DNA of 64,000 bases from Obrimoposthia wandeli (GCA_977020255.1 CDROCS010002866.1:248001-312000); one strand, 5' to 3'; counted from the stretch's first letter, positions 25,958-63,836 are shown. Program-made: numbers and translations. The notes: a model not told the origin generated them from the letters alone.

Positions 25958-25991
25958 TTGACAATCGCGGCGAAACTGTATAAAAAATCAG
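25958..25991 (+). promoter_or_regulatory. Promoter with LexA (SOS) box
   Basis: TTGACA at 25958-25963; CTGTATAAAAAATCAG (CTG-N10-CAG, 25976-25991, followed by TA) overlaps the expected -10 region. Confidence 0.7.
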
Positions 25992-26016
25992 TACACACTG
26001 AATATATTGGTGATTT

Positions 26017-26901
26017 ATGCAAGAAAATCAACAGACAGCTCTCACTCAAGCGTTTGAAGAAATGAGCCAAGCTTTAATCAATTTTGAACGCTTGTTACAA
26101 GCATCGAATTTACCTATTTGGCTACCACTGACCGATAGCGAACAAGCAGCGGGTTTAACCATGTTGAAAAAAGCTGCAAACCTCTATAGCAGCGTTTGGC
26201 ACAATGGAGATCAAGATGGCAGGCTAACGGTGCATTGCCATGGTTTGATTGGAGCTGATTCAGCATTACTCGAAGCGGGTAAAAACTTGAATGCTTCTAA
26301 AAAATCCTTTCAAAGCGCTTTAGTCAGTTTGAGTAATAAAGACCCTCAATTTATCAATAAAACCTTACACACTAGAGCAGGGACTTTAGCAAAGGCATTA
26401 AAATTAGAGGGTTTATCAAGATTACACTTAAAGCAATGTTATCGACAAATTCCTATTTTAAGCGCGCAGTGCCTAAAAGTGCGCTTTAGCTGGTATAGCA
26501 GTGGAAAAAGTATTGTGCGTATTAGCCAGCAAGAGAGCTTACAAAAGCTATTACTGCTAAATCAGGCAAGCCCACACATTCAAATTCAGTTAGAGCAACT
26601 AGGGAACTTGCGACCTGATACGCGATTAGCCCAAGTACAGCAGCAAGTGCCAGTAATGCGGGCGAATGCAGTGTGGCAGGAAACGGATGCGCAACGAAAA
26701 AAAGAGCAAAAATGGCAACGCAAAGCGCGCAATGCTCCGCTACCTTTTTTAGTGCCGCTAACCAAAGGGCAAGAACTGCCTGAGTTCAATCAACCGCCTC
26801 TGGTCGCACCCAAAACACGCATAAGAGCCATACGCAAAGATGCAATGTTAGAAAGCAGCCCGTTACTGCCAAGTTTGCGCATTTATTGTTATAAGCTATA
26901 G
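26017..26901 (+). CDS. DNA replication terminus site-binding (Tus/Ter-like) family protein
   Basis: Recognised by eye from DGR..CHGLIG, LN..K..F, RLHLKQCYRQIP, VRFSW and R.R..RKD segments and ~300 aa size; not confirmed by an HMM search. Confidence 0.55.
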   Translation: MQENQQTALTQAFEEMSQALINFERLLQASNLPIWLPLTDSEQAAGLTMLKKAANLYSSVWHNGDQDGRLTVHCHGLIGADSALLEAGKNLNASKKSFQSALVSLSNKDPQFINKTLHTRAGTLAKALKLEGLSRLHLKQCYRQIPILSAQCLKVRFSWYSSGKSIVRISQQESLQKLLLLNQASPHIQIQLEQLGNLRPDTRLAQVQQQVPVMRANAVWQETDAQRKKEQKWQRKARNAPLPFLVPLTKGQELPEFNQPPLVAPKTRIRAIRKDAMLESSPLLPSLRIYCYKL

Positions 26902-58898: not shown

Positions 58899-61379
58899 TT
58901 ATGCAAGTATGAAATCAGCAGCAACCATTAAAGCAGTACCATTAAATGTACCTACCAATAGAATTTCATCGGCGTAAAAATAGCTATCACCATCAATATC
59001 ATTCGCTGAATATACATAGGTATTTCCACTTTGGCTAGCAACTAAGTAAGCCGAATCATTGGGTCTGTTCGTATAAATCATAGTATATAAATCATCAGCA
59101 GCTCCACTTGATAGAGTTTTGAATAACTCAGTACCATCAGTTGCTATTGATAGATCACCAAGGTGAAGGTCACCAACAGCACCAGTCGTATTCAGCAAAA
59201 TGACATCACTCCTAAGTGTATTCGCTCCAAAAATAAAGTAAGTACCTTCAACACCTTCAACACCTTCACCATCTTCACCACGATCAAAACCATCAGGTAA
59301 TCTGTCAGCTTCAACAGTAGCCACACCAGCCACGCCAGCCGAAGTAAGCCCCGCGCTTAGAGTCACTTTATCAGTTCCAGACACGAAATTATTTATCGTA
59401 TCACGGTCAACGGCTGCTGCCACTGTAGTAAGAATGACATTGTCAATTGAACCTATTCCAACGTTAATTGTATCAATACCCGCACCGCCAGTAATCGTAT
59501 CAGCTCCCGCACCACCAGTAATCGTATCAGCCTGCGCACCACCAGTAATAATATCAGCCTGCGCGCTGCCATTAATAGTTACTCCTGCATCTCCTGAGAT
59601 AATATTATTACCCGCGACATTATCTAAGTTGATTGTTGTGTATTGATTAGCAGCTGTTCCAACAGCAGTCTCATCAAGTGTTAACGTCACAGCATTACCT
59701 TCATGTGTGAAGTCATTATTAGCATCGCCAGCATAGGTATTCGCTTCATCTACTGAACCTGTCACAGCTATAACAGACGTCGATGTAATGGTACCCGTAG
59801 TTTTTACCGCTAATGCATTTAAATCAGCAAGATTTGCTCCAATGGTATCTGTTAATGTCATCGATAATGCATCAGTTGTTGCTCCGTTTGTAAGAGCAGT
59901 GTTGATGTTGGTTGCTGTATCATCCGTTAATGTTGCTGTAACGACGCCTGTCGTCTTTCCTAGAATTGTATTAACCGTGGCATTATTTGCATTGGTGTCA
60001 AAAAGTGTTGCAGCATAATCAGGCGACAGAGTGATTCCCCTTGCTCCTGCGACGGCCGCGACATCCGCTGCAGTTCCGGTAACCGTTTTAACTGTTTGTG
60101 CATTTAATGTCCCAGCAACTATTCCATCAAGTGCGATAAGCACACCGGCATTCAGATTAGTCTCTGAAAGTGTTGTAGTATAATCAGCCGACAAAGTGAT
60201 TCTCCCTGTCGCTGCTAAGGCTGCTAAGGCTGCGAAATCCGCGACAGTTCCGGTCACCGTTTTAACTGTTGCTGCATTTAATATCCCAGCAACTGTTCCA
60301 TCAAGTGCTATAAGTACACCGATCTCCAGGCTAGCGTCAGTCAATTTGACCGTCCCAGCAGCACCTTTGATAGTCACCCCCGCCAAGTTTTCTGCTGAAG
60401 CTATTAATGTTTCAGTGCCCAGTCTAATACCGGCTGTAATGTTAGAAACCGTCTCATATGAAATACCACCACGCATGAATGTGACAGTGCCTGCATTAAC
60501 ACCGCCGTTCCAAGAAGTCAGCGTTATGTCTCCGGTTGCTGGGCCACCAAAACCGATGACCGAATCAGTGACTTGTAAGACAAAAAATATATCAGGATCA
60601 AATGTCTGCGTCAGTCCATCTTTAATTTCAGGATCAACGGTCGGCACCAGTCCATCTTTAATTACAGTATTAACACCGGTTAGTCGTGTCGCTAAATCGA
60701 GTGTTCCGGTATTTATATTTGTACCCACTGATGCTAAGTAAGCCGCTAAGTTAGTTAACGCATCACTACTACCTGCATCAGCAATGGCTTTAACATTATC
60801 TATAATACTTGAAAGTGTACTTTGTATCTCTGCAGAGACGGTACCGGTCGGCATAAGACCTACGAGTGCTTTTGCTGCACTAACACTCTGCGCATCCAGC
60901 GTGACAGCGGTTAACACTTTAGCCGATAAATCACTGTATGCAACCCCGCGATCAGAGACGGCTTTTGCAACACTTGCTTTATTGTCAAGTAGCTTAGCCG
61001 TATCATTAAACAAGGGGTCTCTGGCGATTATGCTTGACAAATAACTAGATGCCGCGAGTAACGTCTCAGCCTGAGGAACACCATTTTCTATCGATTGTAA
61101 AAAAAACGCATAAGCCACGCTGCCAGCACTACCGGCAACATTATCGTTTGTTAGGCCAAAACGCTGTAGCATTGATTCAGCCTGCGCTTCATTTGATAAA
61201 CCTTTAAACTGGGCCTTAAAGATTTCAGTTGTGCCTAGTTGTGCTGCAAGAAAACTGAGATCATTACCATTGGCGACAAAGAGCTTTTCTATCTCTTGGA
61301 ATAAATTTGCCGATGAGGTATTAAACATACTCACGAGTAACGTGTTGATGCCTGTTTCTTCTGATAGAGATAGTGCCAT
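58899..61379 (-). CDS. Large Cys-free, T1SS-type secreted RTX/S-layer-like protein
   Basis: Helical N-terminal region resembling S-layer anchor domains; Thr/Ala/Gly-rich beta region; four GGxGxD-like nonapeptides; C-terminal DFILA; no signal peptide. ORF track starts at 61403. Confidence 0.7.
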   Translation of the reverse strand: MALSLSEETGINTLLVSMFNTSSANLFQEIEKLFVANGNDLSFLAAQLGTTEIFKAQFKGLSNEAQAESMLQRFGLTNDNVAGSAGSVAYAFFLQSIENGVPQAETLLAASSYLSSIIARDPLFNDTAKLLDNKASVAKAVSDRGVAYSDLSAKVLTAVTLDAQSVSAAKALVGLMPTGTVSAEIQSTLSSIIDNVKAIADAGSSDALTNLAAYLASVGTNINTGTLDLATRLTGVNTVIKDGLVPTVDPEIKDGLTQTFDPDIFFVLQVTDSVIGFGGPATGDITLTSWNGGVNAGTVTFMRGGISYETVSNITAGIRLGTETLIASAENLAGVTIKGAAGTVKLTDASLEIGVLIALDGTVAGILNAATVKTVTGTVADFAALAALAATGRITLSADYTTTLSETNLNAGVLIALDGIVAGTLNAQTVKTVTGTAADVAAVAGARGITLSPDYAATLFDTNANNATVNTILGKTTGVVTATLTDDTATNINTALTNGATTDALSMTLTDTIGANLADLNALAVKTTGTITSTSVIAVTGSVDEANTYAGDANNDFTHEGNAVTLTLDETAVGTAANQYTTINLDNVAGNNIISGDAGVTINGSAQADIITGGAQADTITGGAGADTITGGAGIDTINVGIGSIDNVILTTVAAAVDRDTINNFVSGTDKVTLSAGLTSAGVAGVATVEADRLPDGFDRGEDGEGVEGVEGTYFIFGANTLRSDVILLNTTGAVGDLHLGDLSIATDGTELFKTLSSGAADDLYTMIYTNRPNDSAYLVASQSGNTYVYSANDIDGDSYFYADEILLVGTFNGTALMVAADFILA
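59463..59570 (-). repeat. Four tandem 27-nt RTX-like nonapeptide repeats
   Basis: GSAQADIIT GGAQADTIT GGAGADTIT GGAGIDTIN. Confidence 0.85.
59990..60320 (-). repeat. Internal tandem duplication, 174-nt (58-aa) period
   Basis: GVLIALDG.VAG.LNA.TVKTVTGT...ITLS.DY occurs twice; TCAAGTGC at 60127 and 60301. Confidence 0.85.
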
Positions 61380-61655
61380 GATATTATATTCCTTTATAAA
61401 CATCTGATTTATATGTAAGTCGAAAATAATACACTAGGTTGGTGTGTAAGTAAGTAATCCATTAGATACATATTTGACACAAACGACTGATTAGAATATA
61501 TAAGAGTACATCAAATAATCAGGAAAACCTTACGACACAACCCTGTGTTGGTTTGCAAGCTAAAGATTTTTAGCTAAAAAATATGAGTTATTTATGATCT
61601 TTTAACCCCTTTATAGAGGCTATGTTTGAGAGAATTGTTGAAACTGTATATAATA

Positions 61656-62701
61656 AAGGGGTATCCCCTTAGCTCCATTAGAGGATGTTTTACTTATTAT
61701 CCAATAATATCAGTGTACGTTACAGGCTTTGTAATCACAGCTTGTTGCAATAGGCGATAGAAGAGCAAACCTCTCGATTTGGACGACCTACGGTTAAACC
61801 GAAATACGTATTCGTCTAGGTAGTAATCTAGCTGATTTGGCTGAATAGAACCATGGTGTGTTCCTAGTAGCCAGCGTTGTAATAGTGACGCTACTCGATG
61901 AATGGCAGGCATTGATTTATGGGCGGGTATGTCAGATCCTAAATGAACCGTTTTCTTATGTTTGAAATCTAATTCTTCAAGTTTATTATAAGCAGCAGAA
62001 CCATCTGTATGGACAATAGATTTAGGTGATATGTTGTCTTCAATAAAAGGTATTAAGTGGTGTGAATCGCCTTTATCTATTCTTCTTATTCAAACTCTTC
62101 CAAACCCTTTAGGCGAGTTGCACTTCAACAGCAATAACGACAAGTATTTTCTTAGTGTTACTTTTTCTTCCCTTTGGTGACAAGGGATCTAGACGATCAG
62201 TTAACGCTAAATACGTTTCATCAACCTCGACAAGACCTGATAGTAAACTCCGATTAGCCTGCATCATAGACTGCCTTAGTTTGTGAAGCATAGTCCAAAC
62301 TGTCTCATAGCTGCCAAGGCCTAAAACTCTCTGTAATCCTAAAGCACTAATCCCATTTTTCTGATTAGTAATATACCAAATAGCTGCGAACCAAATGCGT
62401 AACTCTGTACGTGTTTTATTGAAGATAGTCCCAGCTGTCACTGTCGCTTGATATTTGCAGGAACGGCAAATAAATCTAGCTCTACTAGACTTGTTCGTGC
62501 TGTCGGTTAGCCTGCATTTTGGGCAAGTAAACCCAGTCGGCCATCTCAGGTTTTCTAAGTAGTTACGACATAATTCTTCAGAGTGAAACCAATCGAGAAA
62601 CTGGCTCCAAGTAGTGGGGTAATCGACACCAGCAATAGGCATTTTTTTAGAAGAGGTCATTCAATGATTTTAATCGTTTTGGAGCTAAGGGGATACCCCT
62701 T
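61656..62701 (-). mobile_element. Inner IS1595-family element (ISSod11-like), 1046 bp
   Basis: Perfect 22-bp IRs AAGGGGTATCCCCTTAGCTCCA (61656-77) and TGGAGCTAAGGGGATACCCCTT (62680-701); 8-bp duplication ATATAATA at 61648-55 and 62702-09. Confidence 0.9.
61697..62660 (-). pseudogene. IS1595 transposase pseudogene (inner element)
   Basis: Zn-ribbon CPKC..CRSC, VEVDETY, HTDG, YLDEYVFRFNRR; +1 frameshift near 62118 and in-frame TGA at 62090-92 split it into the ORF-track pieces 62109-62660 and 61697-61912. Confidence 0.9.
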
Positions 62702-62715
62702 ATATAATATCAGTA

Positions 62716-63693
62716 ATGATTGCATATACAGAATTACGTATCATGAAAATATTTGATTTTAACAAGTTAAAACAAACGATTAGTGAACTCTCTCCTAGAC
62801 AAAAGAATGATCTAGAAAAGCACTTGCTAAATCCCGAATCCCAACCTGAAGTACTTAAATTACTTGAAAAAGCGTTAAGTGGATGCCCTCATTGCCAGCA
62901 TAATTATTCCTATAAATGGGGCACATCTAAAAGGCGTCAACGGTATCGTTGTAAGTCATGTTCAAAAACCTATAATGCGCTTACTGGTTCGCAATTGAGT
63001 GGGCTACATAAACCTGAACGGTGGGAGCAATACTGCCAAACGATGGTGGACTCAAAAACACTACGCGTTGCTGCAAAAGAGTGTCAAATTAATCTGACTA
63101 CTGCCTTCATGTGGCGTCATAAATTTCTAAAATTGGCAGATTTACTCATGAGTGAACAGCTTGAAGGCATTGTCGAAATAGATGAAACATGGTTCAAGTA
63201 TTCTGAAAAAGGCAGCCGTCATTTGACCGCCGAAAAGCCACGTAAACGTGGTAATGACAAGGCTTCTAAGGTAAAGGCTGTGATTGGTATCGATCGGAGT
63301 GGACACGTTGAAAATCAGGTTGTCGTTAGCTTTACGCTGTCTCAACTGAAAGCTGACTTTTTACCTAAGCTGGCTGAAGATCTTGTCCTCTGTACAGATG
63401 GTCATATCAATTATGAATACCTAGCGAAACAGGAAAAAATCAATCACGTGGTATTAAATCAAAGCCTTGGTGAGCGCGTAAAAGACAAAGTTTTTCATAT
63501 TCAAATCGTCAATGCATATCATATGAGATTAAAGCGATGGTTGACGCGTTTTTATGGCGTTGCAACGAAAAATTTGCAGAAATATATAGGGTGGTTTCGT
63601 TGGTTTGAGCTTAATAAACAGGTCGAAATATCGTCAGCAAGCTTCATGAAGGATATGTTGTGCACTGCGTTTCAACAAACTTCCCGAACATAG
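62716..63693 (+). CDS. IS1595 family transposase (outer element), ORF intact
   Basis: CPHC...QRYRCKSC, TAFMWRHKFL, EIDETW, LCTDG, HIQIVNAYH, GVATKNL; stop codon lies inside the right IR; alternative start 62743. Confidence 0.92.
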   Translation: MIAYTELRIMKIFDFNKLKQTISELSPRQKNDLEKHLLNPESQPEVLKLLEKALSGCPHCQHNYSYKWGTSKRRQRYRCKSCSKTYNALTGSQLSGLHKPERWEQYCQTMVDSKTLRVAAKECQINLTTAFMWRHKFLKLADLLMSEQLEGIVEIDETWFKYSEKGSRHLTAEKPRKRGNDKASKVKAVIGIDRSGHVENQVVVSFTLSQLKADFLPKLAEDLVLCTDGHINYEYLAKQEKINHVVLNQSLGERVKDKVFHIQIVNAYHMRLKRWLTRFYGVATKNLQKYIGWFRWFELNKQVEISSASFMKDMLCTAFQQTSRT

Positions 63694-63836
63694 CTTTTAT
63701 AGAGATGTTTAATCTAATAGTCTGTCTTCTAACGTTTTCTCTTCTTTAGGCTTTTCCATGCGGTTGCTTTAGCGACTCTTTCTGATTGCAAAACCGCTTT
63801 CTTACAGATTTAAAAGACTGCGATATCTAAAGGATA

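Follow-up and report, generated by a model that had tools for sequence, protein, structure and literature searches.

We analysed a stretch of 64,000 nucleotides (nt), called the window below, from Obrimoposthia wandeli (GCA_977020255.1, CDROCS010002866.1:248001-312000). Two insertion sequences (ISs) of the IS1595 family, one nested inside the other, are found at 61618-63695 of the window. The present work concerns the transposase promoter of the outer IS, and the predicted operator (box) for the SOS repressor LexA that overlaps it and is interrupted by the inner IS. The features of the locus, with left and right terminal inverted repeats (IRL and IRR) and target-site duplications (TSDs), are the following:

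61610-61617, no strand: left TSD of the outer IS, TTTATAGA; the same 8 bp occur again at 63696-63703, and relatives also have 8-bp duplications
61618-63695, plus strand: outer IS1595-family element, 1,024 bp without the insert, flanked by the TSD TTTATAGA
61618-61643, plus strand: IRL of the outer IS, 26 nt, starting with GGCT and matching the reverse complement of 63670-63695
61626-61631, plus strand: -35 hexamer TTGAGA of the predicted transposase promoter, within the IRL (promoter scan)
61644-61655, plus strand: left 12 nt of predicted LexA box 1 (CTGT half-site and AT core), containing the first -10 copy, TATAAT, at 61649-61654
61648-61655, no strand: left TSD of the inner IS, ATATAATA; the same 8 bp occur again at 62702-62709
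61656-62701, minus strand: inner IS1595-family element of 1,046 bp, whose 22-nt terminal inverted repeats are perfect
62702-62709, no strand: right TSD of the inner IS, containing the second TATAAT copy (62703-62708)
62710-62713, plus strand: right 4 nt (TCAG) of predicted LexA box 1, from comparison with the uninterrupted copy and from the matrix
62716-62731, plus strand: degenerate remnant of predicted LexA box 2 (ATG..CAG, 4.8 bits), of which the relatives L057-L060 have an intact version
62743-63693, plus strand: transposase gene of the outer IS, 316 amino acids, intact, with a zinc ribbon and DDE_Tnp_IS1595
63670-63695, minus strand: IRR of the outer IS, with no adjoining LexA box
63696-63703, no strand: right TSD of the outer IS, TTTATAGA, a copy of 61610-61617

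The outer transposase, whose ATG start lies 72 nt from the tip of the element and is kept in all relatives, matched PF12762 (8e-13) and NF033547 (3.7e-49, 167.5 bits for a cut-off of 75), and its zinc domain matched the IS1/IS1595 model NF050000 (37.5 bits, cut-off 28). The transposase gene of the inner IS is fragmented on the minus strand (62660-62109 and 61912-61697); NF033547 was found on the first fragment with 91.5 bits, PF12762 on both fragments, and PF12760 with 45.8 bits. Both elements present the features of the IS1595 family, i.e. a DDE_Tnp_IS1595 (ISXO2-like) domain, an N-terminal zinc ribbon, a length of about 1 kb, terminal inverted repeats and an 8-bp TSD. The assembly that holds the window (G000) is a very large one of several organisms, with 1.35 Gb and at least 7 lexA genes, and the inner IS is single-copy in it.

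The initial annotation had placed TTGAGA at 61626-61631, TATAAT at 61649-61654, CTG at 61644-61646 and CAG at 62711-62713, and all these coordinates are correct. As it had proposed, excision of the inner IS together with one TSD copy restores TTGAGA, a 17-nt spacer and TATAAT, with CTGTATATAATATCAG lying over the -10. An uninterrupted copy of the outer IS, found in the same assembly (G000:C4529, L002), is 96% identical and exhibits exactly the reconstructed sequence at the insertion point; its IRL and IRR are identical at 22 of 26 positions. The predicted TTGAGA-17-TATAAT promoter, with its -35 in the left inverted repeat, gave 11 of 12 matches in the promoter scan. The CTG-N10-CAG box is near-consensus, with 13.6 bits on a matrix of lexA operators, and covers the predicted -10, a position at which a bound repressor would occlude the promoter. 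In the nested form this operator is split, and neither junction carries a full box (9.0 and 2.7 bits, compared to 13.6 bits for the intact sequence).

We then considered the LexA of the host. An intact lexA gene is present on the window's own contig (C2866:528452-529045; TIGR00498, 260.7 bits). It is a 207-amino-acid open reading frame (ORF) that by sequence corresponds to a cleavable LexA, having the Ser and Lys residues and an AG cleavage site, and a SulA-like gene comes after it. With the LexA of an Oceanospirillales metagenome-assembled genome (MAG), the protein shares 87% identity. The lexA-sulA-like operon (L025:1395-2636, i.e. G000:C2866:528346-529587) presents three LexA boxes of the CTG-N10-(C/A)AG type, at L025:1395, 1436 and 1454, of which the last two are only 2 nt (TA) apart and the first of this pair contains TATAAT. 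The same layout is found upstream of lexA in the Oceanospirillales MAG-10 (L069). The host operators are of the CTGT-N8-ACAG type, the same as the IS box.

The position matrix was derived from 15 boxes, all outside ISs, that precede seven lexA genes, and its training sites score between 14.7 and 21.6 bits. In 264 kb of the 549-kb contig C2866, only 5 positions reach the 13.6 bits of the reconstructed IS box and only 2 reach 16 bits. The top host site (20.0 bits, L045:9139-9154, G000:C2866 at about 361139) is located directly upstream of a gene for a 361-amino-acid DinB-like Y-family polymerase; since the best host site fronts such a gene, the matrix does find real SOS operators. The reconstructed IS box thus matches the host motif, and the boxes of its relatives score between 11.4 and 21.0 bits with the same matrix.

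The left ends of homologous elements were gathered blind to the box, using a degenerate IRL pattern in metagenomes, the genome loci of close relatives and the contigs of a graded series of homologues (86, 77, 75, 71, 64, 57, 57 and 56% protein identity); many of the relatives are known from short metagenomic contigs. When 401 genomes were searched at class level, the relatives that came out were all distant, with 35-42% identity. The elements of the clade measure about 1,024-1,029 bp and have a conserved ATG 71-72 nt from the tip, so that their leaders align almost gap-free. Among the uninterrupted left ends, the comparison that the initial annotation had called for, the box stands at the same position in 9 of the 12 clade lineages, which span 56-96% protein identity. 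Box 1 was observed at nt 26/27 to 41/42 in L053, L050, L057, L058, L060-62, L064, L065 and L066-68 (11.4-21.0 bits). In L059 the CAG of box 1 is changed to TAG, but a second box reaches 20.5 bits. This second box, 2 nt downstream of the first, is found in L057, L058, L059 and L060 (14.2-20.5 bits) and is degenerate in the lineage of the window. Further left-end variants were seen in marine and ice metagenomes.

Over the 12 ingroup lineages, the mean pairwise identity is 0.76 for CTGT and 0.78 for CAG, similar to the 0.76 of the inverted repeat, while nt 61-71 of the leader give 0.34, which is near random. The clade has a support of 99/100 in the transposase tree, and each of its three deep branches includes elements with the box, which is therefore regarded as ancestral to the clade. 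The right end of the clade elements carries no LexA box, and the similarity between IRL and IRR ends at nt 26.

Further IS1595 elements were taken from annotated plasmids. Strong boxes lying directly after the IRL were found in ISAma5 of Alteromonas mediterranea (19.6 bits), in pVb1762 of Vibrio alginolyticus (16.8 bits), in pNi1-3 of Shewanella decolorationis (17.9 bits) and in Pseudoalteromonas sp. KG3 (19.4 bits). These four elements, all those sampled from the ISAma5 clade, have proteins with only about 42% identity to that of the window element. The RefSeq-named IS1595-like elements ISAma5, ISMsa1, ISOar1 and ISBwe1 share with it the family, an IR starting with GGCT and a length of about 1.02-1.05 kb, and for the first three an 8-bp duplication was measured as well; the proteins of these three are, however, only 38-42% identical to that of the window element. 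ISMsa1 and ISBwe1 present only imperfect or ambiguous box-like sequences, and ISOar1 a motif of the alphaproteobacterial type.

ISOar1, from plasmid pOA238_118 of the alphaproteobacterium Octadecabacter arcticus, contains GAAC-N7-GAAC (L096:187-201), just downstream of a -10-like sequence and ahead of the ribosome-binding site for the transposase. The alphaproteobacterial LexA motif is GTTC-N7-GTTC (PMC3323433), and the ISOar1 sequence is this motif, as it reads GTTC-N7-GTTC on the other strand. An exact match would arise by chance in 150 nt with a probability of about 0.005, for a motif seen in one element only. The other alphaproteobacterial relatives of ISOar1 in the plasmid set are a second Octadecabacter copy, truncated at its 5' end, and a broken Azospirillum copy, and no box was found in either. 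In ISBwe1, from pBWB401 of Bacillus mycoides (L105:243-254), GAAC-N4-ATTC lies just 3' of a TATAAT and before the transposase gene; it is one mismatch away from the Gram-positive LexA box (GAAC-N4-GTTC), a likeness to which we give little weight.

One group of the clade comes from a genome in which the repressor itself was not found. The source of the L015 group, G001, is the complete 2.2-Mb chromosome of a gammaproteobacterial MAG (OZ255726.1; L070, L108-L114). A search of this chromosome with the lexA family gave no LexA, and only a UmuD-like protein beside a UmuC-like gene. It carries six copies, 99-100% identical to each other, of an element devoid of the box, together with an older copy (88-93%) that is also box-less. 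The near-identity of the six copies suggests a recent expansion, and their lack of a box fits a decay of the operator after loss of the repressor.

The coupling of the outer IS promoter to LexA and the SOS response, as put forward in the initial annotation, is supported by comparison, through the conservation of the box, the operator scores, its restriction to the left end and its loss in a genome without lexA. We consider it very likely that the clade of the outer IS has a LexA-repressed, SOS-coupled transposase promoter, and that in the window copy this operator and promoter were split by the inner IS. We infer that LexA binds to the box and represses the promoter, and that the promoter is SOS-inducible; this group of IS1595 elements would then probably be switched on by DNA damage.

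In the mechanism that we propose, the outer IS belongs to a clade of 1,024-bp IS1595 elements of marine Gammaproteobacteria, with a predicted -35 in the IRL and TATAAT at nt 32-37. Box 1 (nt 27-42) would cover the -10, and the ancestral box 2 (nt 45-60), 2 nt further on, would cover the region of the transcription start. In undamaged cells, LexA dimers on the boxes would block RNA polymerase. Upon DNA damage, RecA would be activated and LexA would cleave itself, leading to an open promoter and to transposase synthesis. Since the cleavage of LexA would open the transposase promoter, transposition would be coupled to the SOS response.

The inner IS of the window copy has inserted in the AT-rich core of box 1, with the CTGT half, the -35 and one -10 copy now on its left side, and the gene, preceded by the second -10 copy and the TCAG half, on its right side. 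As the two halves lie on opposite sides of the inner IS, operator and promoter are both disrupted in this copy. The full promoter now faces the inner element, and the transposase gene retains only a -10 copy; read-through from the left promoter to the outer transposase gene is speculation. Since both inverted repeats of the outer IS are intact, the 2,078-bp composite could still be mobilised by transposase from the sister copy.

Several observations weigh against LexA control. The plain CTG-N10-CAG pattern occurs 13 times in the window, for 10 expected, and so shows no enrichment there, the conservation of TATAAT is explained by the promoter alone, which leaves only CTG(T) and CAG as LexA-specific, and the locus appeared in no RNA run. 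The training sites of the matrix were chosen by pattern upstream of lexA genes. Among the five host sites of at least 13.6 bits, one falls within a 2-oxoacid dehydrogenase gene and one within a GGDEF-EAL gene, and most host sites at 13.6 bits are probably false; because some other high-scoring sites are intragenic, the score of a single site is by itself weak evidence. The sub-lineage of the window, L002 and L057 has the weakest box 1, with 13.6 bits, below the training range, and a T before CAG, and the window and L002 have lost box 2. The box is absent from two ingroup lineages, L063 and the L015 group (79-80% identity), from the 46% outgroup (L086, L087), and from further IS1595 branches, betaproteobacterial ones included, namely the Aeromonas, ISAchd1, Azotobacter, Acidovorax, Burkholderia, Ralstonia, Catenovulum and Azospirillum copies. 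The lineages share descent, so their counts are not counts of independent events, and the correlation with a missing lexA, like the alphaproteobacterial-type box, is a single case.

One alternative is that the operator is real in the clade and was already decaying in the window, L002 and L057, LexA control having become weak or been lost before the inner IS arrived. The low score of box 1, the T before its CAG and the degenerate box 2 agree with this, as does the score of 18.8 bits in the close relative L053. Nevertheless, CTGT and CAG are both intact and L057 retains a box 2 of 14.2 bits. The TCAG half-site is present in functional E. coli operators. We consider this alternative unlikely, though it deserves some weight, and one box over the -10 is sufficient in ISCR1 and ISCR8 (PMC13393415).

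It is quite improbable, in our view, that the motif is kept for a reason other than LexA, whether as a promoter part (extended -10 or discriminator), as a left-end site for transposase, IHF or Fis, or as the operator of another repressor. Such a role could be suspected because the box overlaps TATAAT, itself kept for the sake of the promoter, and directly adjoins the IRL, and additional regulatory sites are common at IS left ends. An extended -10 does not explain the conservation of CTG, as its TG stands 2 nt, and not 1 nt, before TATAAT. The boxes score as high as genuine lexA operators, and the second box, which repeats the 2-nt spacing of the host lexA promoter, has no role as a promoter part. 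Moreover, the IRR has nothing comparable, the motif is lost in the genome without lexA, and the alphaproteobacterial relative presents its own type of LexA motif instead.

The possibility of a chance AT-rich look-alike, in which a TATAAT promoter has CTG and CAG on its two sides by accident, could draw on the lack of enrichment mentioned above and on the post hoc nature of a finding made in a large scan; it is effectively refuted, as more than 10 diverged lineages have the box in the same place whereas nt 61-71 of the leader are randomised, and sites of at least 16 bits, so rare in the host DNA, occur within about 50 nt in six clade lineages as well as in four from the ISAma5 clade. Finally, IS copies often give chimeric assemblies, and the metagenomic contigs of relatives have unmatched flanks, but an assembly artefact joining two repeats has a negligible probability, because of the intact copy, the perfect 8-bp duplications on both elements, the single-copy inner IS, an independent short-read contig of run X1 (1,105 nt) that spans 61626-62730 and bridges both junctions of the nested form, and the uninterrupted form, with a joint skipping exactly 1,054 nt, seen in X1 and in the seawater metagenome X3.

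Other explanations of details of the locus were tried and rejected. A hybrid promoter formed with the end of the inner IS (TTGGAG at 62679-62684, 18 nt, TATAAT at 62703-62708) has only 3 of 6 matches in its -35 and was not called by the scan. The inner IS was considered as the carrier of a LexA box of its own, but matrix scoring gave none in it. A target consensus steering the insertion into the box was discarded, the 8-bp duplications being AT-biased yet varied, and so was a box forming part of the transposase-binding inverted repeat, as nt 27-45, beyond nt 26, match the other end at chance level (5-9 of 19).

Beyond the LexA-repressed promoter itself, its origin can be considered. The host lexA promoter (L025:1436-1469; L069) resembles that of the IS in having a box 1 with TATAAT, a TA linker and a box 2, and its box 1 has the same first 11 nt as the IS box; it differs in belonging to a chromosomal gene with a third box upstream. 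The two-box promoter may have been copied from a host lexA promoter; the likeness may also reflect convergence on the consensus rather than capture. A left-end variant in the seawater metagenome X3, with a loose end at window position 61654, continues with TCAAGTACT, so that its identity to the host lexA operator (L025:1435-1455) extends over about 21 nt; this hints that the promoter-operator of the IS could derive from a lexA promoter.

On a wider scale, the motif is CTGT-N8-ACAG in Alteromonas, Vibrio, Shewanella and Oceanospirillales lineages, and GTTC-N7-GTTC in ISOar1 of the Roseobacter group; ISBwe1 of Bacillus may carry a Cheo-like box with one mismatch. We tentatively raise the possibility, the less probable side of the balance at present, that SOS wiring is old in a large branch of IS1595, is re-tuned to the LexA motif of each host, and decays when the host loses lexA, alongside IS expansion.

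Some further observations were made on these elements and their surroundings. In run X2, from another organism, a 97% identical copy of the inner IS has one base fewer at 62118, beside the end of a 183-amino-acid ORF, and the inner IS of the window probably carries a +1 frameshift at this position. The tips of the inner IS (61656-61670 and 62687-62701) are each a 15-nt palindrome, AAGGGG, 3 nt, CCCCTT, which could form a hairpin and was called terminator-like on the minus strand by the scan. Immediately to the left of the outer IS, the minus strand encodes an 834-amino-acid protein with RTX calcium-binding repeats (58899-61403). Elsewhere in the window, at 25958-26901, a 294-amino-acid ORF with no Pfam match is preceded by a TTGACA-type promoter that CTGTATAAAAAATCAG (12.5 bits) overlaps, and the surroundings of this box resemble the IS operator. 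ISMsa1 (L091; Marinobacter salarius plasmid NZ_CP021334.1, 85628-87036, reverse complement, IRL at 169) lies inside the LexA box of the neighbouring umuD gene, where removal of the IS and of one copy of the duplication ATGGATGA restores a perfect CTGT-N8-ACAG box; it is a second, independent case of an IS1595-family insertion into a LexA box.

Few reports tie the SOS response to IS regulation, namely those on IS10 and, with dispute, on IS50 (PMC13393415). In ISCR1, ISCR2 and ISCR8, LexA boxes over the transposase -10 bind LexA in gel shifts, and ISCR1 and ISCR8 are SOS-regulated (J Bacteriol 2026, PMC13393415). The likeness to the IS1595 element is close, with a CTGT-N8-ACAG box overlapping the transposase -10 near one end of the element. 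However, the ISCR elements are IS91-related, of the HUH rolling-circle type, and have a single box whose role was shown by gel shift and lacZ fusions, whereas the IS1595 element is of the DDE type, with ancestrally two tandem boxes, a -35 in the inverted repeat and clade-wide conservation, and is known from sequence only. For IS50/Tn5, a LexA site at the promoter of a DDE transposase was claimed to repress transcription (Kuan and Tessman 1991, cited in PMC13393415); this site is weak and its role disputed, with reports of raised as well as of inhibited transposition upon SOS induction, while the boxes of the IS1595 clade are near-consensus and conserved. The intI promoters of integrons (cited in PMC3323433) likewise have a LexA box over the promoter of a mobile-element recombinase, widely conserved and lost in some lineages, but intI encodes the tyrosine recombinase of a gene-capture platform and not of an autonomous IS.

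The initial annotation knew of no description of LexA control in the IS1595 family, and in the open-access literature we found no paper linking LexA or SOS to it; there, ISAma5 is named in no paper and the papers naming ISSod11 deal with other subjects. The principle is thus known from ISCR, and what appears to be new here is another IS family and a conservation that is clade-wide rather than limited to a single element.

Very few ISs are known for which direct control of the transposase by LexA has been shown, IS50 being disputed and ISCR1 and ISCR8 dating only from 2026, and here a whole clade of DDE elements would carry a conserved, often double, LexA operator. Elements of the ISAma5 type, which present such a box too, are found in Alteromonas, Vibrio and Shewanella on plasmids that are large and in several cases conjugative. 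A natural experiment on repressor loss versus IS expansion would be offered by the reduced, IS-rich genome that has no lexA and in which the box was lost. If the proposed control is true, ultraviolet light or antibiotics would set off bursts of IS1595 transposition in marine bacteria, which would make this family a testable case of stress-induced transposition.
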